Assembly: GCA_000708835.1 (NCBI GenBank)
Contig: DF236976.1
Coordinates: 248,001-312,000, forward strand
Origin: Klebsormidium nitens
Lineage: Eukaryota > Plantae > Klebsormidiophyceae
DNA: 64,000 bases
Direction of reading: 5' to 3'
Every line of letters starts with the position of its first letter. The stretch's first letter is position 1. A program made the translations under genes and the position numbers. Positions 10,590 through 59,600 of this stretch are shown here, piece after piece. The notes under the pieces were generated by a model. That model was not told the origin of the DNA and did not search any database. It saw only the letters and a program-made list of their open reading frames with translations.

Positions 10590-12797
10590 GGTATCCGCAC
10601 GCGGGCTTGTATATGTCCGCAAACCCAGAGTTTGCAGGTAAGGCGCTAGCGTACGGGCGCCTCCTGATTCAGCACACTGCTGACGTAGCTTGTGAAAACT
10701 TAGCAGCTCGCAAGCATGCACAGCTTGGCGCCTATCACCCCGCCTGCCACCCCGCCCTAACAAAGATCTGAACGATACAAGCAACAAACTGCTCCAGACA
10801 CCGCTGCACGTTTGGAGCGCAACAGGAGCAGATGGAGACGTTGGGCAGACCAAATAAGGAGCCCTAAGCAGGCAGGCAGCCCTGGCCATAAAGCGTCGCC
10901 ATGTGAAATGCCTCTGCCACTTCTTTTCTACCTGCCTCGACCCTTGACCTTGGACGGCCATGCACCACCAGTTTGCGTACGTGGTCTCTGCATGTGACAT
11001 CAGGATGCAGGAGAGCGGAAGGGATCCCCTCCGAGTCCAGGCGGCTTGCGTTGGACAGAGACGTCATCACGTCCGAGTCGTTGTCCACCGGCAATCTGCT
11101 TTAACACAGTCATTACTGCTTTGCGGTGGCTGGCCGGGCCAGTCACAATGGTGTGTCAATTTTTCCATGCAGCAACCGTCCGCAAGTGCGGATCACTTAT
11201 AAAGGACGCCTCTGTTTTTGCACTAGGGGGGCCGAGTGCAAGGACAGACTTGGGGTTGGCTGACCCCCTGGAATTCGTTGCAAAATCGTGCCTTCATGTG
11301 CAGTCCTTGTACAATTCTCATGCACTGGCAGGCGAACTTCGGAAAGCTTAGATATCGTACCGCTTCCTGAATTGCAAGGGGTACCGTATACCTGTTGGCT
11401 TACAAAGTAGGGGCATCATCTAATGGCATGCAGGATGCTGGGATAGACAAGCAGGTGAGCCAGTGCACATGGACGCTAGAGAATGTTCTTGGGCCTCACA
11501 CAATTGTTGATTTTCTATGCAATTGCCTTTGCAGAAACCGTGCAGAGGGAGGAGTGGCTCCAGGTTTGCTCTATTTGTATGGCCTCTTTTTGAGTTTAAT
11601 CTGGTCAAGCAGGTCAGAGGAATAGCAGCGTTGGCCAGGGCACAAAGTGCTGTGACTACTTTCTGGTCTTTCAAACAGTCAGTGAAACTCCTTGTCTGGA
11701 GGATGTCTGGAGAGAGAAGGTAGTTGCCTTTCTTAGTTGAGAGTAACCTCCACCAGGGTTCCACTGAAATGTTCCATGAAAATGCAGTACATAGGCTAAT
11801 CAAAGGCGGTTGTAGGCTGGTTAACACTGTCTCAACCTTTTCGCGTGCAGGATGTCGCAAGCCCCAGCAGCGGCGGGCCCCCGCATTGTGAACCCTACTG
11901 AGGAGAGCCTGTATCAAGTCCTCGCTGAGGAGCTGACAGTGGCAGAGGACAAACGAGACGAAACTAAAAAGGGTAAGAACCAAGGCTGCTTGACTGTTCA
12001 AGCACTGTAAACGAGTTCGTTCATGACAGCCGAGTTTTAAAGTTGGCCTCCTAACTTGGATGTTGCATCTCAATCATATGCAGCTTCTGAGGAAGCTCAA
12101 AGATCTGCTTGCTGACATAGGTGTGTAGAGAGGCAGAGAAAGGATCCAAATCAAGAGGAAATGTAGAAGTTCCTCTGTGCTCCTCAGCTTCTTCTTGTTG
12201 GTTGCAGCTCTCAAAGAGACCCTTCTGGCTGATCTGCGTAAGGAGGTGAAGCGACTGAACGAGGTAAAGCCCGCTTCTCAAACCACCTCAAGAAAAGCAC
12301 GTCTACCGCGTGGGCAGCGGATTGCACTCTGAGCTAAAGCAGGCTGCCATTGTATCCTATCAACCATTTGGAAGCGCTCTGCGTTCTCAGACGACATGCT
12401 TTGTGTGCAATGCAGAAACTCTCTGTGTGCAAACCGCTGATTTCTTTTTGAGATCTCAAAATCGTTTCAGTCCAATGTGCCAGGCTTGTCTTGTGTAACG
12501 GTGAGGAGTATCTTCCTGAAGACACTGTGCAACATGTGCCCCTGTGCACACACTTTCCCTTGGCTTGCAGGACGCTTGGATGTTTGCTGCCCCGCGCAGT
12601 AACATCCCCTGATCCTACTTTCACAAGCAAAGAACCCCCATCCTTGACCGCTATCTCAGAGGAGGTCTATATCCTCATCAAGCATCAGGGTCTCGTGTTT
12701 ACCCTACCTGACCTTACGAGCGTAGGCATAGAAAACCTTGAAATCACTTGTAGGAACCAAACGGCTTAGGTCGATTACTCATTACCCGGGCCCAGCC

Positions 12798-28500: not shown

Positions 28501-29599
28501 CGTCCTCAACCGAAGCCCCGAGCTCCGCCGCCGGGGAGCCCCCCTCGTCTGCGTCGACTTCGATCAACACCCCCCCGACCTCCTTGATCCGCCCCGCTTT
28601 TAGGTCCTCCTCTAGTTCTGCATCGAGCTCGTCGAGCATCGCGTTGAACTCCTCCTCTGAGAGCTCCTGGGATTCAGCCTCTTCCATCTGGGGAGAGCAT
28701 TCGCGAAAGGAGATGTTACAAGGATGGAACTCGTCTGCTATAATGTTGGAACAACTTCGTTGAACAAACTCTATCGGCCTGGCAGATTAAGAGGGCAATC
28801 TTGGATGCTGGCCAAAGTGCGTTTTGGGGGACTTCTTTTGCTTTGCGGACAAGGTCCAATTATGCCCTGGGCAGACAACGGAAGTTGCATACTGATTTGT
28901 AAGGACGCACTTCTAGGCTGGTGACCCTTCCCCGTAGCAACGAACTGAAATTCTACTGGCAACACAACTCTCCAGCATATATATTTCCCTACTCTGAACC
29001 AACACAACTCCTCTTCCGTGGCAAGCCAAGCTGCAGAACACTTTCTTTACAGACTCCGGAGAAAGCAGAAAGCACCACTTCCCCAGACAGAAAGAAAAGA
29101 GCCACCTTTGGCCCAGAACCAATGCCCCCCAATCCCCACCTCTTCCACGCCGATCACAACCTAAAGGCGCCCATCATGACCTAAGTGGTCAACAGAGGCG
29201 CTCGCCAAGCTCTTGATGATTCTCCGATCTCATACATCCGGTCGACCACCCTCACATTGCCACAAACCTACGAACGCTGTCAGAGCGCCTCACCAATTCC
29301 TCCGCCCGCGTTCGTTGCTTTCTTGGGGGGGCTTTTCCTGTGGCCTCTTTTCTTCGCCGCTCTGCAGGACCTGGCCGGTTTTTCCCCGCTCTAGTTTGCA
29401 CTGCAACCCCCCTGGGACTACCATCTGCCGCCCCAAAACATATTTGCCGCTGGAGCCTGCTTGTCTGAAGCTCTGGCCAGCGAATGGGGTTAAGGGAGCT
29501 GACAGAATGGGCAGAGCGGATGCCTTGTGTGTGGTGTGAAAAGGTTGGGGCTGTGCATTGGCATAGGGAGCCAAGTCTAGCTTGCAGAACGGACGTCAT
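25568..29599 (-). CDS. OCP3: OCP3-like plastid-targeted homeodomain-like protein; exons 29599-29294, 28687-28004, 26832-26590, 25789-25568
   Basis: Transit-peptide-like N-terminus, long acidic tract, TWQERKLRWAL, and KRIKKVNLETFEKVYR..PS|REQIQDLVKLTHIPYKTVVEWFD matching the OCP3 C-terminal domain; phase-0 junctions. Confidence 0.85.
27641..27940. repeat. Degenerate strand-biased (A)AACCAG(G)C minisatellite in an OCP3 intron
   Basis: Several irregularly spaced aaccaggcc/aaccagc/aaccggc variants (e.g. 27641, 27698, 27831, 27851, 27918). Confidence 0.5.
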
Positions 29600-29665
29600 G
29601 GTGATGGCCTCAGAAGAGAGACAGGCTGCAACGTTGGGCAGGAGTTGAGTGTTAGTTATTCCGAA

Positions 29666-30030
29666 GGAGAGTCGATAGAAGGATGGCAAATTTTCATAGG
29701 GAGAGTGGAGGACCTCCGGCTCCCAGTTCTCCTTGTAGCGTTTCTTATCGTGCTAATGGATTCAGCAGAACTTTCTAGTCACCATAGAGGAGAGTCGATG
29801 GAAGGGTGGTAAGTTTGCTTAAGAAGAATAAACGAGTTAACAAAACCAATTGTACTTGTTTCTGTGGTCTTTCCAATGATGCCAATAGATTCATCAAAGA
29901 TCTGTAAATTTTATTGATGGAAGGGGTGGTAAAGTTGCGTGACAAGAATGGAGGTCCTGTTGGTCGGGATTCTAGTTGTTTCTGTGGCCTTTCTCATTAT
30001 GCCAGCGGATCAGCAACACTTTGTAGACAA
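29666..30030. repeat. Diverged ~120-bp tandem repeat (about 3 units) directly upstream of the OCP3 start
   Basis: ggagagtcgat(a/g)gaagg at 29666 and 29789; gatggaagg(g)gtggtaa at 29797 and 29916; ttgtttctgtgg(t/c)ctttc..at(g/t)atgcca at ~29856 and ~29976. Confidence 0.7.
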
Positions 30031-30994
30031 CTATTTGCCTGAGCGTAGGCTGCGCAAGTACCAAATTTGGAGAGGGCGGAGCTTGAAGCGACTTACAGAA
30101 TGTAGGAAAGAAGACCCACGTCAATCCGAGATTATGTGCAAATGGGTGCACACAAAGTTCAAAAGGGTGAGCCGATGGTAGGAGTGGTGAGAGGTGTTGC
30201 ACCATTACCAATTGAACAAAGGGAAGGCTTGGCAGACTCTCAAAGAAATGGTGACATGAAAATGCGCAGGACGGGGTAAAGCATACACCTTCAGACTTGA
30301 GAAGCTTCATTCAGTAATGGCACCAAATCCCAACAATCATGCCACTATGCGGAAGAACTAAAGCCTGAGGGAGGCCTTCTGATGCTAAACCTCATGCTTG
30401 AAAATGATTCAAATTGAAAGCATAAAACATGTGTTGAAGGGAAACGAGGCGGCAAACAACGCACCACCTCTTCATCGAGCCCAAAACACAGCATCGTGTC
30501 ACATTTGCCTTGACTCACCTCCAGGTCTTCTAGAGGGAGAGGACCTCTCTGCCTGCTCTGCCTTGGTCTCGTATCAAATAGCAATGCTTTAGCATTTCTG
30601 TTCTTCAAAGGCTGTTTCCGATCGCGTCTCCACCGTGTGCGCGTTGGGTCAATGTCAAAATTGGCATTGCAATGAGCCAGCTCGCCTGCCGCCTCTCAAA
30701 AGTACCGTACCATGCAGGGTGGCGCAGGAAGCTTCTAGGCGCTTATGTTGCCGTACCAGTGGGAATTTAGAGCTCTTTTTTATTTCAAGCACATAACCCG
30801 GCGCAGCGCAATCGGTACCGGGCACACTAGGGGCTCGCTAGCCTGCACGTATTACAAACCGGTGCAAACTCGACGTCAACCGGCTTGGTCCGCTTGCATC
30901 TCGTCTGAAAACTTGTGTGCAATACGAGCCCTGGTCTGGACGTTTGAACAGAAGGCGATGAAGCCACAGTCCAGGACCACTCGCACAACATTGA

Positions 30995-31666
30995 CCTGAG
31001 CCAACCCAGACTCACGGCCCGTTTTGAGAAAACCTCTCAAAACACCAATTTGAAAGTTTGAGTAAAACTCTCAAAATACGGCGATCGATTTTGGACAAAT
31101 CGTTCGTATCCGGTCGGGTCTTTTTGGAGAAAATGCTCAAAATTGCGTCGTACGATACGAACAAATTGCCAAATTTGCGACCGGGTCCGGCCGGGTCTGC
31201 CGTCGCGACCGTCGTGCGGGTAGTTTTCGCGGAATCTCCACCGTCGATGCAGGTGGACCATCGCGCCACAACATCGATCGCGAAGACCGCCAGGATCGCG
31301 GTACATATTAAAAGGACGGTACCCTTATGGGTGGTTGGTCGGAGCGGCGGGCGGCCGCAACTTCCCGGGGACAACGGGCACTTCCCTGGGGCAACCGGGC
31401 CTTCCCGCTTTAGGGGTACACCACTGCGAGTGACAACCGAGCAAGTCCTTTTTGTTTTAGTGTGTGCCCGGGGCTTGCAAGTTGCAGAAATTCGAACCTT
31501 TTCTTCGAAAGGCGCAGCTAGAATACGAGCGATTTGATCGAAACTCGACCGGCTGTTTTGAGCAATTTGTTCAAAAACCGGCTGTTTTGAGCATTTTGTC
31601 CAAAACGACACGGCTGGTGTTCTGAGAGGTTTTCTCGAAACGGGCGTGAGACTGGGTTGCCTGAGC
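30995..31666. mobile_element. 658-bp non-autonomous DNA transposon (31002-31659), ~46-bp TIRs starting CAACCCAG, 7-bp TSD CCTGAGC
   Basis: Left caacccagactcacggcccgttttgagaaaacctctcaaaacacca is the near-perfect reverse complement of the right end. CCTGAGC at 30995-31001 and 31660-31666. Subterminal direct repeat ccggctgttttgagca occurs twice. Confidence 0.88.
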
Positions 31667-32355
31667 ACTGCTTCTTGAAGTTCAAGTTCAAGTTCTAGGA
31701 CTAGAACGTTCAACCTCGAAAAGTGGAGCATTGCAATCTCTGCAGCGTTGCAGGCCAGGGCAGCCTGCTCTGTTTTCAAGAATCTAGGTCCTACAAGACG
31801 TTCTCTGGCGCACAGACCCCTTCAATCACCTCTGCCGTCGGATGCTCTTTTCTACATTTCGTGAGGCCTGTCGAACTGACAAGCAGAAAGCCTGTTAATG
31901 CAACTAGGTGCGGCTAGCGCAGGGACGCAGGCCTCAGACGTTACGAATAAAGGCCCCCTTCACGTGGCAGCATTCTCTTGGCCGTACTTGGATTCCAAAT
32001 GAGGGAATCCCTTTGTGGGGTTCGTTGCTGAGCACTGCGAGGAGCCGCGAAAAAGTCCAAACATACTGCCAGGATGATTCTTGCGAAGGCAGGTATCTGA
32101 TTCTCATAAATCTTCCTCGAGCAGTTCTGCTAATGATGCTTTTGCAAGATCACAATGTTGTGAGCAAAGTCGGTGTTGCTTGCAATTGCGCTGCTCCTTC
32201 GGCACTCTGCACGATTCAAGGTGCAAAGCTTAGACAGTGCGCGTCCGTTTCATTGTTGCATGCATTGGCCAGTCCTATGACTTGCATCTGCTTCAATATT
32301 CTTTCAAGGTCCTGTGAATGCTTTGAGTTTCAAGCTCTGGTTCAACAGAATGCAA

Positions 32356-33167
32356 GGGGCCGTAGCCTAAAAGGGCAAAGCGCCAGGGGTGGCCACCGGA
32401 GACCCACTGTCGGAACCCAATCGGACCTACTTTTATTTGGTTTTGTATCTGAATCAAGGACCAAAGACAAGAACCAACCTGAAACCAAACCAAGGACCCA
32501 ATCCAACCCATTGTTGACCCAGTTTAACCTTTGTTTAAGACCCAATGGACTACAGTAAGGAACCAAGCAGAAACCAATTTGAAGACTCAATTGAATCACA
32601 TCTGAAGACTCAATCGACACGATTTGAGGACCCACTTAACCCACTCCAAGAACCCAACCGACACCAATTTATTGACTGGAACCATTTGGGATCATGACTT
32701 ATTTGGACGCGCTTCGAGGACCCAACAAAACCATTTTGGACGACACAATTGGACCCACTTCTAGAACCAATCTGGACATCTGTCCAACCCATTTTTGCTT
32801 GATCTACTTGGACCCAACTCAAGGACACAGATTGGCTGAAACGTGAACCAATTTGGTTTGTCATTCTTTCTAAACCAATGGACCTACAGAACCATGGACC
32901 CACGGACCCGCATGTGGAAGGGCATCGCAAGGCAGGCGTTGCTTATCGCCCAAGTTACTACAGCCAATCCAGGTGGCAAAGCTTAGGGGCAATTGACCGT
33001 TATGGTTTGGTCCACATGCCGTTCAAGCGTTGCCCCCTGGTCTGGCTGTGTGTGGCAAGGGTGTGTGGCATGCAAGCCGAGCATGTCTCGAAGCAGGACG
33101 GTCCTTGAACCAAAACCGAGAGTGTGGTACACCCCGAGAGATGCTGGTTCGAATCCAGCCGGCCCCA
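32356..33167 (+). ncRNA. tRNA-framed element E1: tRNA 5' half and 3' half separated by a ~725-nt insert in place of the anticodon loop
   Basis: 5' GGGGCCG-TA-GCCT-AAAAGGGCA-AAGC-G; 3' AGAT-GCTGG-TTCGAAT-CCAGC-CGGCCCC-A. Perfect 7-bp acceptor stem and 5-bp T-stem; closing helix GGGGTG/CACCCC then GCCAC/GTGGT. Expression not shown. Confidence 0.7.
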
Positions 33168-33381
33168 GAAACGGTTTACTCACTGAGAATCATTCTTTAG
33201 TCCCTCACCTGTAAACAAGGTTTTGTGGGTAGATTAACCGGGTCACTCTCTGAAGCTTTCGTATCGTAATTGGTGCATGGAACTCGTACGCAACACACTT
33301 GCCGAAGCGCAGAAAATGCTTATCTTATCTTGAGGACGTTTAACGAAGTTTGTGCATTTCTTGTAGGAAACGGACCAGGGC

Positions 33382-34706
33382 ATGGATGAGGCTGACAACG
33401 ACAAGTTCGTCTTCCCAATGCTGATCGGAAGGAAGCAGCGGCGGCCGCCTGACGACCCCTTCTTCAGGACTGGAGACGAGGAACGGGAGCTCTTGGCAAA
33501 GCAGGTGAGTCCTGCACGATTTCGCAAGAGAAGAGCTCTGCATTCAATTGCTGTGATTGAGAAGGGGCGGGAAAGCTGGTGACAGCGTTGGCATGTGGCG
33601 GTTTGTTGACAGTCTGGAGATCTGGTCGTTGGCGGAGCCTCCAAGTTGCCTGGGAGTCTAAAGTGTCCGTACATACAAGCTGGTCAGATTCACTCTTCAA
33701 ATCTTGTACCATGCCCTGGCAGACTCGTGATGCACTATGCGAGTTCCAAGGCTGGCTGCTTGTAAGCATGTGCACAGTTTCCCGAGTGAAGAAAGAATGT
33801 AAGACCTGGGGTGTGAAAGCACGTCCGATCTATCATCATCAAGTCTTAAACATGTACTCCCTTGTTTCATGATCTTCTTCGTCAAGAGATTTGGCCTCTT
33901 ATTCCGATCCCGGATTTGTCCAGGCTGCACTCGAGCTGAGCCCCGAGGAAGCCACACAGCTTGTGGTCGACGACAAGCCCCCGGGAGGCCACGGCTGGAC
34001 GTGCCCCTTCTCTAGTTGTTCCGTCCACCTCGACGGGCCCGCCGCTTACGACCAGCACTACTCCGCTGCGCACGTCAACTCGTGCCGTGTGTGCGGCAGG
34101 GCCTTCCCGACCGTCCGATTGCTCAGCATCCACGTGTCGGAATCTCACGACGCCTTCTTCCAGGCGAAAGCAGCGCGGGGCTTTCCGGTGTACGAGTGTC
34201 TCGTCGAGGGGTGCGGGGGCAAGTTTCAGAATGCGGCGGCGCGGCAGCAGCACCTGAGGGACCGGCACCACTTTGCGGCGTCGTTTGTGTTTGGCAAGGG
34301 AAACCGGAAGCAGTGGCCGGTTGAGCAACCCGGGAAGCGAACGGATAGGAACCGAGGAGAAGAAACGAGGACGGGAGGAGGTAATAGTAAGGGACGAAAG
34401 AACGGGGGTGTGGTTACGGAAAGGAACGACAAGCCGGTTTCGAATGGACACATAGATGTTTCGGAAAAGGCAGAAGGTATCGCGACGTGCGAGGCCCCAT
34501 CTGAAGCAGGCCCGGGGGATGTCTCGAGCATGGACGTGGAAGATCTGAGCAAAGGGTTTTCAAGGCTTAGCACGACCGGTGAGGGAGTCGAAATACCTCG
34601 GAACATCACGTTTGGCCGGCATCGAGGACGACTTTTTGATGAGAGCTTGTTGAGCCGGAAGCAGATTGATAAGAGTCAACGATTGACAAGAACGCTTCAT
34701 ACCTGA
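33382..34706 (+). CDS. ZNF511: ZNF511-like C2H2 zinc-finger protein; exons 33382-33504 and 33924-34706
   Basis: PDDPFFRTGDEERELLAKQ|AALELS, three C2H2 fingers (CPFSSC..H..H, CRVC..H...H, CLVEGC..H..H), HDAFFQA and C-terminal PRNITFG. Confidence 0.88.
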
Positions 34707-35167
34707 GCCAGGGCTTTGCCTATGCGCACTGTCCATGTTTTGATTACCTCTGGATCAAGGAGGATCAATGAGGAAGGTACCTTACGAAATCTGAAAGGAT
34801 GGATCATGTGCATCTATGAATGGATCAAGGCATGTTTCTGAAGAGTGGTTTTCCGGAGCCACCTTTGCGGATACCAGCAGCTCAAGTGAATGTCCTCACT
34901 GAACTTCAGCTTGATTACGAATTTATAGATTGCATGTTTGTCTAAAGACTACTGCTAAAGTTTGCTACACTGATTGAGCGGGGCCTTACCCAAAGCTGTA
35001 AATGTGTACCCAATTTCTAAGTGTGCAATTACTCTATCTATATGTTCGTTCCCGCGTACCTTGCATATGAAATACATATAGTGCCCTTCCTCAAGATGGA
35101 TCAATTAAGTTGTTTACGGATTTCGCCGATTATGCCCGGCCCATGGGCGACATGAGAAATGATCGAG

Positions 35168-37082
35168 TCATATGTGCTTCCATCCGATCCTCTGCCATTC
35201 GACATGCCGGTACTCCGAGTCTACTCCATGAAGAGAGTCTTGCAAGCTGCGTGCAGCTTCAATGAGGGCAACGCATGAGACGATCTTACGATGGGCCTCG
35301 TGATTGAAAATATCAAGATCATAAAAGTCGACTATCTGCTTTGAGCACATGATATTCTCAAGACTACCCGAGCAGGCAACTACATGTCATGCCATGCAAA
35401 CGACAAGTAGCTCGGTTAACGCTTGCACAAACACATCACATGACTGGTTGCTGAAGTGAGCATGCCCATACTCCCAAAGACCAGGCTTGTTGCTTGATTG
35501 CATGAACATATGCAGTAGGGTTTCCGTAAGATGGTCTTACTGCTGTGAGCCAAAAGCTGGCTATGTTTTGTCGCGTGGGCTTCTATGATTTAGGTGATAA
35601 TCCATCTGACAGTGCAAATCAATTCGTGAATCTTCGCGTATCCCGTCTTTGAACTTCCTCGCACTCCTGTCAATCTGGTTACTAAAGACAGGCGCTCCAT
35701 CTTGCAAATCCTTCTGTTCTCTCCTGCGCCTCACCTCTCTGCAGGCTGCAAGTCCTTGACTCTTCCCTTGACCGCTCAACTCCAACCGTTTGAGTGAAGT
35801 AAGAGTCCTCAAGATGTCCAAGCAACTAGATACCGCTGGAACAAGGTCGACATCCCACCGAGAAGCAAACAGACAAGATAAGACCTAACTCCACATTGGG
35901 AGACAAACATAATGGAAGGGGAAAACGCCAGAGACTCGTAATGTCTTGATCCAATCTCTGGAGCTGGCCGGACTTGAACCGGCATCTCTCAGTGCACTTG
36001 TGAGACACGAGATGAGAGTTCACTGGGGTTCCCTCCCACCCATGATTTTAACTGCAGATTTGACCCGATTGACTGAGCTAGAGCGGCGATTTGAGTGACT
36101 GACATGCCACTTGGACTGGTGTGGACATGCAGCGGGTGCCAACCCTGAGCCTGTGGGTGTTGCAGCTCCCCAAGTGCACTTGGCGCTCTGCCTTGAGCTA
36201 CAGCCCCTCCGGAAGAATGATCGAATGAGAGTAACAGAACTCTATCTGAGTAGGAACTCTTTCTGAGCAATTGCTTCTGAAGAATTGACCAATTAACTTC
36301 CATCAATCGTCTCTGAATGACACAGAACCAAGAACGGGAAGGACAGCATAACAGGCAGCCAGAGCTGTCGGGATAGACAGAAAGATTTAACGAGTATGAG
36401 GAACTCAGATTCGATCAATGCTCAGCATGCATCGTCTTGTTCAAGTGCTCACTCTTCAGAGATGCAAGGGCAAAACTCAGACTCGCCTTGGCGTCAGCAT
36501 TGGCTTTGAACAGCAGGCCTGAGCGGTACAGAACCTTGAGCAGGAGCGCACCAAGCAAAGGATCTTCAAAGCCTAGAGATTAAACTAACATCATCATTGT
36601 TTGGCCCTCAGACAACAGGTGGACTTACATCCAACGAAGCAACTATTTGTTCAGAAGGGTTGTGGTTGCAACCTTCGCATCATCTTTCCAACCTCTATGC
36701 GGATTCTTGCAGCTCATTGTCGACAAATGCTGCATCAGAGGCGGCCAAAAGGAGCAGAAAAGCAGATTGTCGTTTGCAAACAAGAAACGGCCAGAATAAC
36801 CAGGCCTGATATGGAGTAACACGGCAATCATACTCCACATGGGGCGAGCGTGGCAAAGAATTAAATTTGTGTCTGCATGGCCACCCGTTTTTTAAACTCG
36901 CGTTCCCTTACAAAAGGCAAGCAAGCGAACAATAACCACGCCCTTCGCCGTCCATGACTCTGAGCGCCATTTCCCCCAGACATTGCTACCTCAGTACCTG
37001 GGGAGTCTGGACACGTACTGGAGACGTCGCTATCTCCATTTTGCAAGGGTGCACCTTTACCATTCAGAAATGTAGCGTCCAT
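35168..37082 (-). pseudogene. Possible multi-exon gene or pseudogene of unknown function with one LRR-like exon; spans element E2
   Basis: AG/GT-bounded segment ~35877-35728 reads VLSCLFASRWDVDLVPAVSSCLDILRTLTSLKRLELSG...; terminal-exon-like 35337-35168; ATG at 37082 divergent from XPO4. I could not join the middle exons in frame. Confidence 0.3.
35959..36207 (-). ncRNA. tRNA-framed element E2 (249 nt): tRNA-Ala-like ends with the anticodon arm replaced by a 10-bp helix and a ~165-nt insert
   Basis: 5' GGGGCTG-TA-GCTC-AAGGCA-GAGC-G; 3' AGAT-GCCGG-TTCAAGT-CCGGC-CAGCTCC-A. Perfect D- and T-stems, G3-U70 wobble, A73; helix AGTGCACTTG/CAAGTGCACT. Confidence 0.75.
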
Positions 37083-37323
37083 TACCAGGATTCGTCAAGT
37101 AATTTCGGTATGTTCGTCGTCCTAGTTCGCAGCGTCTGCAAGCTTTGCAACGGAGCCTGGGGAAAGAAGACTTGCAGTACGGCACCTAGCCGCTACTCCT
37201 AGCACAGAAGGGCGGCTCTGGGATCGAAGACCTGCCAGTGGAACCTGAAGATCTATGCACGTTGTTAATGCTCAGCTGCTGTTGAATGAATCGAGCGAAC
37301 AGGGTCCGTACTGAGAGAGTCCG

Positions 37324-40300
37324 ATGGAGGAGGTGCTTCATACCTTTGAGCGAGCGTGCGCGGACCTGCAGGTAACTCGTCGGTGGAGGACTGGTTCCCG
37401 GTACATTGACCTTCCTCTCCCAGTTGTCAGCATCTCAGTGTAGATCTTGCGAATTATGAGGAGCCTGCAAGAATCTCGTGCAAGGCAGCCAGTGTTTCTT
37501 CATGTCATGCTCGTGTTTCTTCTTCAAATTCGGCATTGCGCACAGAACAGGGGAATTGTCGGAAGAGGTGTCGGGTTGCAGCAACCCTGTTGTACCCATC
37601 ATTTTATTGAAGAAACTTACTCGTGTCTCTTGTCAAGCCTATCTAATTCGCAAGCAGATTATTCGTTTTCACCACCATTTTTGACCAAATTACCTCAGTT
37701 TCACTACACGCTTAATGAATGGTGCCTTCCCGACGTGCACGCTCCACATCAAACTTTAAAATCCTGCTTGTGGATTGATCACCGAATGGGGCCTCAATCG
37801 AAGCGATATGTCCTACAACTTTGATTTCACTTCTCTGCGTGCGCAGGTTCCGGAGACGCGTGCACACGCAGAGGCCGTACTCCTAGCGTTCAAGAAGTCG
37901 CCGCAACCGCTGCAAGCATGCCGCTTCATCCTGGACCATTCGCAGAGCCCGCTGGCGCGCTTCCAGGCCGCCTCGGTCTTGCAGGAAGCGGGCATCAGGG
38001 AATGGAGCCCCATGTCGCTGGACGAGCGATGGGGACTGAGATCGTGAGTTCGTCGTGCAATCTTGTTAACGTGCGAGCACTCTGCTTGGCAGCCTTTTAT
38101 AGATGCACACGTGTGGTAGTACAGACCAGGTCATCAGACTCGGCTGAGCCGGTATTTGCCTGATGAGGACATTTCGAAGGGCGCTTCACAACGGGAAGAC
38201 AAGCTGTTGGGACCATGCACAAGCCCGAGTGATAGCTTTTAGCTTCCTATCCTCCTTTGTAGACACATTTTTCTGTCCATTGTTCACAAGGATGCAACAC
38301 TTGTAAAGACAGGGCTTCTAGAGAAACTTCTCGAAGATCTTATGCTCCGGGTAGTATCTGGGTTAGCCCTGGCACTCTACTGATTCGCCGCTTGTTCCAG
38401 AACTTATGATTTGCACATCTCCTATTTCAGGTACTGTCTGCAATGGGCCCTGGCCCATGCCGACGACCCCGCCGGCTTTGTTCGCGGCAAGATGCTGGCA
38501 GTGGTCGCTATTCTACTGAAGCGGGGCTGGTCGGAGAACAATCCATCGGACAGGGACAGCTTCATACGGGATTTGCAACATGCGGCGACGGGCGCCGGAG
38601 GCCCCGCTGTGCAGAAAACCGCACTGTCGCTGCTCGAAGCAATTGTGAGCGCCTCGATGTTCCTTCAGCGGGTCCTTTCGTTTCTTTTAGAGTACAAACG
38701 GCTTGGAACAGAAACGCTCTCTTGGGGGCTTCTTGCTTTGATTAGAGCGCTTAATGCACAAGCGCGTGCGTTATAGACCGACACCCGTTGATGTTTGCAC
38801 GTTCGTCAACCCGAGTTGCCCAAACCTCAAAACAAACCCGTCAAAGAAGGCACTTGCAAGATGAACGTGCTTATGGCATCGTCGGCAAAGCAACGGTGGT
38901 GCAATTGCGGTCACTTCAATGTCATTTCTCAGTAATGAAAGCTAAATTGCCTCTCCCCTTGTACTTTTTCATAGTGATTGGATTCAGTGGCTTTTTCTCA
39001 CAACTCCTGAAGCACAGTACCTGCTTCCAGGTGTCTGAGTTCGCCCCCTCTACCGCCAGCCCAATGGGCCTTTCCGCCGAGTACCACGAGCAGTGCCGCG
39101 CATCCCTCGAACGCGACTACCTGCGCCAGTTCTACCTCTGGGCTCAGCAAGCGGCCCACAGCGCCGCCGCCCAGATCGCCCACCAGAACGACACGCCCAC
39201 CCACGTCGAGATCTGCGCCCAGGCCTTCAAGCTCATGGCGCACGTGCTCGGCTGGGACTTCCGAGGCCCTGTTCGGAGGCACGCCGCCGCGTTCTCCAGT
39301 GGCCGAAGCGCGTCCGAACCGTCCGGCAGGGCCTCGCGGAAGGAAGGCGACGGGCATCCTGCTCCGGGGGCGGAGTGGGGGGAGGTTCTGCTCAATCCGG
39401 AGAGCGTAGATTGGGTTATCGGGTTTTATGCGAACTTGCGGCGGATTGGAGGCCTTCCGGGCCTGGCGGGGGGGTTGGGACAGGGCTGGGAGGATGCCCC
39501 CCTCGCAGTGGCGGCACGCCAGGTCATCGTACTTTTGTGTGGGCTGACGGGGGAAGTATTTGGAAAGGACGAGGGTGCCAGGAGAGCGCACTTGCAACGG
39601 CTGCTGACGGGGGTGATGACGTGGCTGGTCCCTGCTGACGTGGCGGTGCAGAAGGCGGCAAATGGGAGTGAGGCGGAGCTGCTGGACGGTTGCAGGTGAG
39701 ACCGTACCCGATCTTTCGGTTTGTTCTGTTCTTCGACTCTCTTACGAAGCGTCGGAAGGAAATCTCCCCAAAAGTTCCTCCCCCTGACTCACGACCGGTC
39801 TGAAGCAAGTACGCTTCCTCAATGTCTTTATGAGCCCCCAGGAATGTTTGTGTCCTGGAAGCTCGTTTCTGAAGCCTCTTCTAGCGTCTGATTGTACTGT
39901 CCCTTCCCACGGTCCATGCTTTGTGCAGAATCTGAAGGCAACCTGCATGAGGGCCCGAAGGCCCTTCTCACCTGCGGCAAATCGTCGCCATCGTTCTTAA
40001 ACCCCTCGTTGTATCCGACCATGAATCTCGAGCGCGTCCCTCCCTTTGATTTACCTGCCGGGCCTTCGTCACCCTTTATTTCTCTAGTTGACCTTTTCGA
40101 ACTTTCGTATCATTCTGGAGACGTCTCCGTTTCATTTCTCAAAGAATTCAGTCTTCTGGTCTTTGCAGGGCGCTCGCCGCCCTCTCGTGCCACTTTTCCG
40201 CCGCCGCGTTCAACCAGGCCGCCCCCCCGGCTGCTCCTGACCGCGCGGGCGCGATCCACTCCATCGCCGCGCTTTCCTCCGTGGTGATGTCAGCGGGCGG

Positions 40301-56635: not shown

Positions 56636-59600
56636 CTACTTCTCGTCCCCTGTCGGGTGGCCCGTCTTTCCCGCCTCCCTCAAAACCTCCTGCTTCGAGC
56701 CAAACCACAAGTCCAGCGAATCCTTGTAAAGGTCGATGAATCCCCCGTCCACCGTGATTCCCTGCCCGGTGATGAAAAACGAGTCGGGGCTGGCCAGGAA
56801 GACGGCCAGATTGCCGATGTCGTCAGGAGTAATGTAACGGCCCCCAAAGCCCATTGTGCCTACCATTCCCTGGCTGCAATCAGGACGATAAGGCGGAGTT
56901 CGTAGAGAGAACGGCTGGAGTATCGCCATCGCATGTTATGAGTAAGGGATCGAAGACACAATGTCGACAAGCGCTTCGTGTGGTTCAAACCTGGAAGCCT
57001 GCGAAAGTAACTCCTTAGCCGCTCCGGTTTATGCAGGAGCTCCCACCTTTCCAGCACAAGCTACTCACGCACTTCCAGCGAATGGGGAAAGCTCTCGTGC
57101 GAACGCAACATCTTAGCACCTGACCGTCTGTGTGACCGTCCCACAGAAGATAACTGTTTCTTCATTTCGTACAGACACGTAAGCTGCTCCTTCACATTCA
57201 AACGACGTCCCACTTTCGATAGCACCGTCTTCCTTCCAACATATCAAGGCCACATCCTGGCGCAAACAAAGGGAAGCAAGAAACGGTGATAGAATCCCAG
57301 ATTACGTCGTCCAATCTGCCCATCAAACGGTCCGCTCACCCGAGCTGCTCGTCCGTGAGCTTGACGTCCGGGTTCAGGGAGTGGATCAGCGGGGTGACCA
57401 CCCCCCCGGGGAGGATGCAGTTCACGCGGATGCTGTGCGCCTGGAGCTCCGCCGCGGCGTTGCGAGTGAGCCCAACGATGGCCGCCTTGGAGGCAGCGTA
57501 CCTGAGGGGGGTTCGAGAAAAGGGGTCAGATAATTGGGTTTCGCCAGGGCAGATCTGTTGCGTTGGAGAAGTGCGAAGAGAGTGGAGAACAGCTTTCAAG
57601 ATGGGCTGCGAAGAAATTATCATCTGGAAGCTCACAACGTAGTGACAGGTTTTTGAAGTAAATCCTCCCGCGTGAATCCAGCGGGCTCCGGCCCCCGAAA
57701 ATTGCTATTCGAGAGGTCTAATACCAAGACGTCGCTCTAGGCCCCTGTTCTACGAACCGAGATAAGAGTAAAACGGCTTCTCTCATGCTTGGTGTCATTG
57801 TTCGTCCGATGCCGACAAACTCGGCGGAATCAAAAAGAACTCATGAGCTGCGCTTGGCAGGCATCTTCAGCTTGGAGAAAACAAAACCAGAGCCCTGAAG
57901 TAAACGTCTTCTATTTTCGGGTGTGTTCGGCAACCTGCCAGTACATTCCTCATGTCCATCTCCGTCTTCTAGAACTCGAACCTAGGTGTCGGGCGTAATC
58001 GGAAGCTTCGTGCCTGAAGCTTCGTGCCGCGTGCTTCGTGCCTCGTGCCTCGAAGCTTCGTGCCTCAAGCTGGGGAAGCAAAGAATTTCGATCACTCCCA
58101 ATTTTGTCCCGTGGGAATCTGATCTTTCTCCGCGCATCTGAAGGTTCAAACTCATGTCCTTTCACGTTCCTCACCCATGCGGGCCAATGCCCCCGGCAAT
58201 CGCCGCAACGCTCGCCGTACTCAGAATGCAGCCCGTTTTCCGCTCCTTCATCACTCTTGCCGCATGCTTCATCCCCAAAAACACGGACCGCAGGTTGACG
58301 TTCAGCGTGAAGTCGAAGTCCTCCACTTTCGCCTGATCGATCGGACCCCGCTCGCCAACAATTCCTGCATTGTTGTACATGATGTCTAGCTTCCCGTGTT
58401 GCTTGACGGCCGCATCGACGGCGGCGGCGATGTCATCCTCCTTTGTGACGTCACACCTGGGGGTTTTAGAGATTGCTTTTGAGCGGTTAGAACGTTCGCC
58501 GGGCTCGATCGTGGAGTCAGATTGGAGTCAGATTGGTCGGGACTGACGAGAAAAGGGAAGAGCTACAGACTACAGTCAGACGACGATAGGACGGTGCTTC
58601 TGCGTTCTGGATTATATCTGAGAGTGTTCAGAATGTTGTGAGACCGCGAAGAATTTGGCTTCAAATCGCAAGAACCTAATGAATTGGAACCTTTAGCATA
58701 AACCGTTCCGGCGAATTGATTGGTTCAGGCCACAACAATTGACCGGATTGGAAGGGACAGCGATGTTTGGTCTCCCCTGCAGCGCCACACCTACTGGAGG
58801 CTCCAAAAAGTCAAGGACTCATTTTGAGGACACAGCGATAACGTCAGCCTTTTGGGACATACGCCAGAGGGGTTTTCGAGGGCGTTGTAAGGCAATTGAG
58901 GTGCTTGATGCCCTGGACGTTCGAGCTTTTTAAGGGCAGGACTGGGCACCGTCTCTTTGAAAACGTTCAAGGAGAAGTTGTGTAGAAGCAGTGGACTGAA
59001 GTTTTCAAAACCCCGCCGAAGCTGTGGACACAATTCCACATACAGAGACGTGGACCTACCAGATCTGCTCTAGCACCTTGGCACCATCTCAAGCCTGAAG
59101 AGTGTGTGCCGAAAAAGGAGGGAGTTTATGCGAAAGGAAAACACAGCTTAAGCAACCTACATGGACGAAATCCGAGCTAAGGAGGTTCAAATCCACTTGA
59201 GGTGTTGCGAACCAGGTTTGCCCGTGCTTATAAGCGTCGCCACTCCAAAGCAGCCACCGATAGAAGTATCCCACAAACAAGATTGATATCTTCAGGCTTC
59301 AGCTAGCGGAGTGGCCTGGAGACAACGGACACTTACTTGACGAACGACGCTGCGGATCCGAGCTCCTTCACAACAGCCTCCCCAAGCTCTACTTGTCGAT
59401 CAGCAACGATGACCTGGCAGACATGGACCAGTTGAGAATCTATTTTTGCCATGGAGAGACTTGTGTGGGAGATATTTGCAGAAATAGATTCATGAGGTTT
59501 CTCAAATCCATGTGAAGATGACCCAAATCTTTTCAGCTTTCGAAAAGCTGAAAAGAGTATGTTCAGGTCTATTTCTGTAAGAGAGACAAGTGTGTATGAG

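Follow-up and report, generated by a model that had tools for sequence, protein, structure and literature searches.

In transfer-messenger RNA (tmRNA, or SsrA), both ends form a domain that resembles the acceptor stem and T arm of an alanine transfer RNA (tRNA-Ala), and a long helix in place of the anticodon stem connects it to a large cargo. A similar arrangement is found in two elements, E1 and E2, from the nuclear genome of the alga Klebsormidium nitens. Both lie in a 64,000-nt stretch of DNA (GenBank assembly GCA_000708835.1, contig DF236976.1, positions 248,001 to 312,000 of the forward strand; hereafter the window), and E2 additionally carries the G3-U70 pair and A73 seen in tmRNA. However, tmRNA lacks a D stem, carries a reading frame for a tag peptide as well as pseudoknots, and is bacterial or organellar. 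In E1 and E2 the D arm is complete and no reading frame is conserved; their orthologues are separated by insertions or deletions (indels) of 1, 2, and 6 nt that in E2 are frame-breaking. They are nuclear and are hosted in transcripts of RNA polymerase II (Pol II), and their pair 3-70 is G3-C70 in E1 and A3-U70 in one E2 orthologue. An assignment to tmRNA was rejected because the tmRNA mode of ARAGORN finds no genes in the window, Rfam offers no match, the D stem is complete, and the indels break the frame.

Structured functional RNAs are also known from the anticodon region of tRNA-shaped precursors, as in the archaeal tRNA-Trp intron with its box C/D guide and in metazoan tricRNAs. A working tRNA comes out of such precursors, which contain a genuine anticodon loop together with a splice site of the bulge-helix-bulge or 37/38 type, whereas E1 and E2 have neither an anticodon that can be rebuilt nor bulged splice sites. 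Rodent BC1 and the ID elements are of tRNA-Ala origin. Of the tRNA they keep only a 5' domain, which has lost the cloverleaf fold, and they have spread by retroposition. E1 and E2 resemble them in being a noncoding RNA family derived from tRNA-Ala, but their cloverleaf is intact, is split around the cargo, and is syntenic between species.

The same architecture also exists in an artificial construct. In the tRNA scaffold engineered by Ponchon and Dardel, the acceptor stem and the T and D arms are kept, the anticodon stem-loop becomes an insertion site held by a helix, and the chimera is processed precisely by tRNA enzymes while the inserted RNA is shielded (PMC3753655). That scaffold was built for E. 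coli, whereas E1 and E2 are natural, conserved, and eukaryotic, with processing that we only predict. A tRNA shape within a longer transcript also directs cuts by RNase P and RNase Z in plant dicistrons of tRNA and small nucleolar RNA (snoRNA), in MALAT1/mascRNA, and in plant mitochondrial t-elements, and an association with snoRNAs is part of this likeness (PMC3858429). There the tRNA-like unit is a neighbor of the other RNA and comes free as a small, separate product. In E1 and E2 the tRNA body encloses the cargo, such that the two ends of the cargo RNA would be tRNA ends.

We propose, with a probability of about 0.55, that E1 and E2 represent a family of nuclear noncoding RNAs in which a tRNA-Ala-derived body clasps a cargo, and that they are made within Pol II transcripts, excised, and stabilized as a natural tRNA scaffold. 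The body, consisting of the acceptor stem, the D arm, the T arm, and a 4-nt variable region, would clasp both cargo ends. The host of E1 is an intron in the 5' untranslated region (5' UTR) of a ZNF511-like gene, and that of E2 is an apparently noncoding transcript that also carries a box C/D snoRNA. RNase P, which in the plant lineage is the protein-only enzyme PRORP, would cut before G1, tRNase Z would cut after A73, and CCA would be added after the latter cut. The L-shaped body would then shield both ends, allowing the cargo to accumulate as a discrete stable RNA and to serve as the working part together with some partner. We infer these steps because the elements keep the features recognized by RNase P/PRORP, tRNase Z, and the CCA-adding enzyme, namely the acceptor stem, the T arm, the D/T elbow, and the discriminator, and because there are precedents among plant tRNA-snoRNA precursors, which are cut by RNase P and RNase Z, and among engineered scaffolds. 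Moreover, PRORP requires the acceptor stem but not the anticodon domain (PMC3858429).

E1 occupies positions 32356-33167 on the plus strand (812 nt) and E2 occupies positions 35959-36207 on the minus strand (249 nt). Their parts and hosts, each with its basis, are as follows.

32089 to 33366, plus strand: host intron of E1, best read as a 1278-nt GC-AG intron in the 5' UTR of the ZNF511-like gene (RNA contig joint; sequence)
32356 to 32387, plus strand: E1 5' frame, with acceptor 5' strand, U8-A9, D arm, G26, and the 5' strand of the anticodon-stem stub, CCAGG (sequence and frame table; a conservation island starts exactly at 32356)
32388 to 32399, plus strand: E1 basal helix, 5' strand, including a GCCA segment kept in relatives (minimum free energy (MFE) pairs; BLAST island to 32398)
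32400 to 32900, plus strand: species-specific part of the E1 cargo, an A/C-rich, G-poor array (motif density; alignment)
32901 to 33123, plus strand: E1 cargo core, about 225 nt (semi-global alignment to the whole cargo of the orthologues)
33124 to 33133, plus strand: E1 basal helix, 3' strand (MFE fold)
33134 to 33167, plus strand: E1 3' frame, with CCGAG, the AGAT variable region, T arm, acceptor 3' strand, and A73 (island ends exactly at A73)
35475 to 37000, minus strand (inferred): host stretch of E2, transcribed and apparently unspliced (RNA contigs in four runs)
35959 to 35992, minus strand: E2 3' frame, A73 at 35959 (frame table; conservation island ends at 35958)
35993 to 36178, minus strand: E2 cargo with a three-way junction, and its nearly invariant basal helix of 14 bp (fold; conservation)
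36179 to 36207, minus strand: E2 5' frame, G1 at 36207 (intron-mode ARAGORN; frame table)
36468 to 36607, minus strand: box C/D snoRNA, about 260 nt upstream of E2 (C box, D box, terminal stem)

The 5' frame common to both elements comprises a 7-nt acceptor strand, U8-A9, a D arm of 4 bp, and G26. The common 3' frame comprises the 4-nt variable region AGAT, a T stem of 5 bp, the loop TTCRART, the acceptor 3' strand, and the discriminator A73, and neither 3' end encodes CCA. Comparison of the frame table with standard tRNA numbering shows that the bases that build the tRNA L shape are present, namely U8, A14, A15-U48, G18G19, G26-A44, T54T55C56, and A58. With its 7-bp acceptor stem, 5-bp T stem, G18G19, and A73 without CCA, the frame offers features that RNase P/PRORP and RNase Z could recognize. 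A conserved anticodon-stem stub (CCARG/CYGAG) follows, and the place of the anticodon loop is taken by a long helix and the cargo, which add 170-730 bases. In all three elements tested by RNA folding, the acceptor stem and the T arm form, and a long helix stands where the anticodon arm would be. This basal helix has 11 bp with one bulge in E1, where MFE pairs join element positions 31-41 with 769-780, and in E2 it has 10 bp, a bulge, and then 4 more base pairs. E2 has a 6-nt D loop in addition to its G3-U70 pair.

These frames had been proposed from the letters alone, and most of that sequence-only reading has stood up well. The exact coordinates it assigned are borne out, and ARAGORN arrives at the same end points when introns are allowed. 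The CAxGA internal loop that it described, followed by a helix of 10-11 bp, is found in both elements. Its compensatory pairs 6-67, 51-63, and 30-40 hold in the frame table, which adds a fourth pair that differs between E1 and E2, 13-22 (T-A versus C-G). As it also stated, the flanks of E1 and E2 contain no target-site duplication and no encoded CCA. Its view that no anticodon loop can be rebuilt is upheld, in that the bases beside the conserved stem give no canonical loop common to the orthologues.

Standard tools do not explain either element. In its default mode ARAGORN finds no tRNA in the 64-kb window, and no Rfam model, that for tRNA included, reaches the gathering score in the window or E<=1 over 31000-38500. 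With introns allowed and the default threshold, ARAGORN returns exactly two matches in the 64-kb window, and these are E1 and E2. Loosening the threshold gives 140 matches in the window, and the two matches at the default level therefore stand out. Regular-expression searches of the window for further 5' or 3' frame halves found none; a T-loop-like match at 59184 has no T stem.

The gene between E1 and E2 encodes a ZNF511-like C2H2 protein whose matches are all from streptophytes; the closest of them in the protein collection (P0001) shows 56% identity. P0001 and the members of its cluster led to four loci of a related alga, two in Logan assemblies (L001 and L073) and two in JGI samples 3300060285 and 3300060284 (L071 and L072, respectively). 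In all four an E1 orthologue lies upstream of ZNF511 on the same strand, with only its 3' part held by the L073 contig. In L071 and L072 an E2 orthologue follows downstream of ZNF511 on the opposite strand, and is followed in turn by a box C/D snoRNA and XPO4. The order E1, ZNF511, E2, box C/D snoRNA, XPO4 is thus identical in the window and in the relative. The XPO4 exon is 84-86% identical at the protein level between the two, and a second protein search with this exon returned the same two JGI contigs and no further relatives.

When positions 29000-40000 were compared with L071 and L072 by BLAST, the coding exons aligned together with four noncoding islands at 32356-32398, 33134-33167, 35958-36215, and 36462-36608. 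The E1 islands start at G1 and end at A73, and the E2 island ends within 1 nt of the element at the 3' end and within 8 nt at the 5' end. In alignments that include 100-nt flanks, conservation falls away within about 10 nt of G1 and directly after A73. Apart from the snoRNA, the noncoding DNA that can be aligned between the lineages is confined to the two frames of E1 and to E2 in its full length. A finer gradient is seen between the close relatives L071 and L072, which are 97.0% identical in E2 (no gaps), 97% in the E1 frames, 95.6% in coding sequence, 93.3% in the snoRNA, and 92.7% in the E1 cargo (one gap), versus 84-85% with many gaps in intron 2 and intergenic DNA.

Pair statistics were taken over seven sequences and 21 frame pairs. 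Seven of these pairs vary, and five (3-70, 6-67, 13-22, 30-40, and 51-63) have changed on both sides; of the remaining two, one has changed to a wobble and one carries a single mismatch, in the E1 of the window. If two invariant mismatches are set aside, 132 of 133 frame cells are paired. Selection for RNA structure in both E1 and E2 is therefore supported by the syntenic orthologues, by conservation islands bounded near the tRNA ends, and by the compensatory changes. This agrees with the central proposal of the sequence-only reading, a nuclear family of tRNA-mimic noncoding RNAs selected for their structure.

The two mismatches, C28xA42 and A29xG41, are found in all seven sequences. Ordinary plant tRNA-Ala pairs positions 28-42 and 29-41, and it is relative to this general picture that the mismatches appear to be derived. 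Together with the nearly invariant basal helix, they point to a dedicated partner.

Pair 3-70 is G3-U70 in the E2 elements of the window and of L072, A3-U70 in the E2 of L071, and G3-C70 in all E1 copies. Judged from these bases, charging with alanine could not hold family-wide, because L071 E2 has A3-U70 and every E1 has G3-C70. The L071 copy (11886-12122, minus strand) has lost the alanine identity pair through what is either a real variant or an assembly error. The same two explanations apply to the E1 orthologue at L001:469-779, in which C8 replaces the nearly universal U8.

The cargos differ between the two loci. That of E2 is about 150 nt long and can be aligned across lineages (mean column identity of 90% for three sequences; BLAST identity of 76%), whereas its flanks cannot. 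The consensus fold calculated with RNAalifold places the 14-bp basal helix, almost invariant in sequence, at the base of a three-way junction, with 78 pairs in total, five of them compensatory. The E1 cargo measures 733 nt in the window versus about 230 nt in the relatives. Its 3' 225 nt are homologous to the cargo of the relatives, with a z-score of 8.5 in semi-global alignment and none of 300 dinucleotide shuffles as good. The first half of the region 32400-32900 cannot be aligned to the E1 cargo of the relatives, and the second half is weakly similar (z-score of 4). A cross-lineage consensus fold for E1 was rejected as too dependent on the alignment, because 35 of its 104 pairs are broken in the window species.

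The 32400-32900 region is a G-poor array with 17 G[GA]ACC motifs of the form G[GA]ACC(C/A)A, a density of 34 per kb versus 2.2 per kb in the window. No second copy of the array occurs in the window, and it is largely absent from the E1 of the relatives. It also contains the four T4-T5 runs of E1, and it could be an array of binding sites or a simple expansion.

No homology between the E1 and E2 cargos is detectable by alignment (z-scores of 0.6 and -1.5). A 15-mer that the two inserts had been said to share, CCARTCCARGTGGCA, is indeed present at 13 of 15 positions, but the match does not exceed chance on its own: about 0.1 such matches are expected by estimate, and 24 of 200 shuffles are at least as good in local alignment. 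A similar motif, TCC..G(K)TGGCA, recurs in orthologues of both E1 and E2, and the two cargos may possibly have a common origin. Because the cargos of E1 and E2 differ and each is kept between orthologues, what the family shares is the frame, the two mismatches, and the basal helix, whereas the cargos are locus-specific yet conserved. The cargos were also searched for a telomerase-template-like repeat and for a box C motif, and neither was found. A reading of the cargo as a box C/D snoRNA was rejected, as the C box is missing from all seven elements.

Evidence on the host transcripts comes from Logan contigs of four RNA runs mapped to 31500-37000; such assembled contigs carry no information on RNA ends. 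Carry-over of DNA is negligible, because the intergenic segment 34996-35363 has a depth of 0 in all four runs. In three of the four runs, a joint at 32086>33365 (with three ambiguous letters) skips 1278 nt, which are best read as the GC-AG intron 32089-33366. The ATG of ZNF511 is at 33382, and this intron is therefore a 5' UTR intron that holds all of E1. Splice-site sequences that flank the L001 orthologue are similar, and hosting by an intron thus appears to be conserved in the relative. In those three runs, contigs that retain intron 1 have depths of 56, 75, and 92, and the spliced junction has depths of 54, 29, and 66. The fourth run gives a single contig, at a depth of 185, that retains intron 1 yet splices intron 2. 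Intron 2 (33505-33923) has a depth of 0-6 versus 128-222 for the exons, which corresponds to removal of about 97% or more. RNA that contains E1 is therefore about as abundant as the mRNA, since intron 1, unlike intron 2, is covered at depths of 56-185, on a level with the exons.

E2 lies on a contig that extends from 35475-35481 to 36896-37000 in all four runs, at depths of 18-121 and with no joints. The same contig carries the snoRNA, an RNA of about 140 nt with a 9-bp terminal stem, a C box (ATGATGA, 36591-36597), a D box (CTGA, 36477-36480), and a long hairpin inside. Its identity to the copies in the relatives is 79%, and Rfam has no match for it. The E2 host looks noncoding, because nothing in it beyond E2 and the snoRNA is conserved. 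Look-ups of RNA contigs through the chance open reading frames that overlap this host returned none on record.

Several observations weigh against the natural scaffold. The effective depth of the comparison is two lineages, one of which was sampled three to four times. RNA contigs run unbroken across both boundaries of E1, which means that uncut molecules certainly exist. The depth over the E1 intron could mean simply that the intron is retained because its GC 5' splice site is weak, as contigs cannot separate retention from a stable excised RNA. The minus-strand orientation of the E2 host is deduced from the two RNAs that it carries, and its putative start is near 37000, head to head with XPO4. 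Finally, no internal T4 run interrupts E2 or its orthologues, and one occurs 23-33 nt downstream in all three species, as might be expected of an RNA polymerase III (Pol III) gene.

One competing explanation, which we consider unlikely, is that the tRNA shapes are signals for cleavage or regulation that act in cis on the host transcripts, and that the cargos have no role in trans. A cut at E1 would reduce the amount of unspliced ZNF511 pre-mRNA or destroy it, and a cut at E2 would give exonucleases an entry point for releasing the upstream snoRNA. Both elements do lie within Pol II transcripts, E2 260 nt downstream of the snoRNA, and the maturation of plant tRNA-snoRNA precursors depends on RNase P and RNase Z (PMC3858429). 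The location of E1 in the 5' UTR intron appears to be kept in the relative, as the splice-site likeness in L001 suggests, and the E1 cargo tolerates a lineage-specific insertion of 500 nt. However, a bare tRNA shape would suffice as a cleavage signal, yet conservation of the E2 cargo matches that of coding exons (76% across lineages; 97% versus 95.6% for coding sequence between the close relatives), and this cargo contains compensatory pairs. The core of the E1 cargo is conserved as well, and a specific partner is indicated by the invariant mismatches and the nearly invariant basal helix.

Also improbable is that E2 and similar short members are stand-alone Pol III genes driven by A and B boxes, in which case the Pol II contigs would be unrelated read-through. 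The A-box-like sequence TAGCTCAAGG and the B box GGTTCAAGTCC of E2 are intact, and the distribution of T4 runs around E2 would suit such a gene. Yet the boxes would be spaced about 200 nt apart, no conserved TATA-like element lies upstream of E2, and the absence of T4 from a 240-nt sequence is roughly a one-in-three event by chance (an estimate). Furthermore, E2 is part of a well-expressed contig together with the snoRNA. For E1, the involvement of Pol III and TFIIIC that had been suggested from the sequence is implausible: the element has four internal T4-T5 runs, none of the E1 copies in the relatives is followed by a T4 run within 80 nt, and the host is a Pol II intron. Given the placement of T4 runs around it, E2 may still be transcribed by Pol III alongside its Pol II host.

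Far less probable is that E1 and E2 are real tRNA genes with giant introns of 733 and 171 nt, respectively, that are spliced by the tRNA splicing endonuclease. With introns allowed, ARAGORN does model E1 as tRNA-Thr(GGT) with a 733-nt intron and E2 as tRNA-Pro(TGG) with a 171-nt intron. About one-third of K. nitens tRNA genes have introns, according to a 2026 review of algal tRNA genes that mentions only canonical introns for this species (PMC13578239). To arrive at its models, ARAGORN has to shift the anticodon stem, distort the D arm, and accept a variable region of 7-8 nt. A real tRNA would keep its anticodon, but the anticodon called for E1 is Thr in the window, Pro in L071, Met in L072, and absent in L001, and that called for E2 is Pro in the window and Gln in the relatives. 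E2 has no U33 loop at all, and the sole U33 loop of E1 has C37 and an anticodon that the relatives do not share. A 3' splice site at the expected place would fall within a perfect duplex lacking a bulge, and the cargos are more conserved than expected for an intron. The Thr and Pro calls were rejected as artifacts because orthologues receive differing anticodons.

It is scarcely credible that E1 and E2 are decaying tRNA-Ala pseudogenes or retroposons resembling short interspersed elements that received insertions, even given frames clearly derived from tRNA-Ala (GGGGCYGTAGCTCA...GAGCGC, and G3-U70 in E2) and a lineage-specific repetitive insertion in the K. nitens E1. Each locus has its orthologue in a relative in which neutral DNA no longer aligns, the stems are maintained by compensatory changes, and neither a target-site duplication nor an A tail nor a further copy within the window was found. 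The tRNA-framed mobile element that the sequence-only reading had offered as an alternative is likewise excluded by the conserved synteny and the lack of target-site duplications.

Full-text searches of the literature returned no description of RNAs like E1 and E2, and this kind of RNA looks undescribed. If the tRNA body of the natural scaffold does direct excision and protection, it would constitute a third natural route to stable RNAs of small or medium size from Pol II transcripts, beside assembly of small nucleolar ribonucleoproteins (snoRNPs) and cutting of the Drosha/Dicer type. It would also provide a natural precedent for the tRNA scaffold of biotechnology, as well as a new class of substrates for PRORP, tRNase Z, the CCA-adding enzyme, and possibly alanyl-tRNA synthetase and exportin-t. 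The conserved cargos raise the question of what role they play. For genome annotation, standard tRNA and Rfam searches miss genes of this type, and tRNA finders that tolerate introns mislabel them.

We also entertain, as a speculation that is rather unlikely to hold in full, that streptophyte algae possess a whole class of tRNA-clasped cargo RNAs. These would derive from introns or snoRNA-type hosts and would be matured by RNase P, RNase Z, and CCA addition, perhaps with export by exportin-t, rather than by end protection of the snoRNP type. A subset with G3-U70, such as E2, might even be charged with alanine. RNAs of this kind would be a nuclear-encoded eukaryotic parallel to tmRNA in architecture, though with another task.

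JGI metagenome contigs were scanned with a 23-nt pattern from the 3' half of the frame, which gave 69 loci. The acceptor end of the family occurs in none of them, which shows that GAGAGAT followed by a T arm is not specific to the family and that the scan added no new members. By ARAGORN, 37 of the 69 loci are ordinary tRNAs, mostly Asp and Ile, and the other 32 received no identification. Two recurrent groups among the loci (L005, L015, L065, and L069; and L009, L029, L036, L055, L060, and L062) have a good T arm and an acceptor-like 3' strand at the end, and ARAGORN called no tRNA or tmRNA in the 450 nt upstream of either group. Near the pattern match, four further loci (L003, L011, L021, and L058) contain a tRNA-like sequence with acceptor, D, and T arms but only about 8 nt (CTCGAGAG) in the place of the anticodon arm. 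ARAGORN makes no call there, and the sequence is unrelated to the family of the alga.

At 31655-31659 in the window, the RNA contigs of all four runs break and continue into three different unrelated sequences. This suggests a further splice or transcript junction just upstream of the ZNF511 5' UTR exon.

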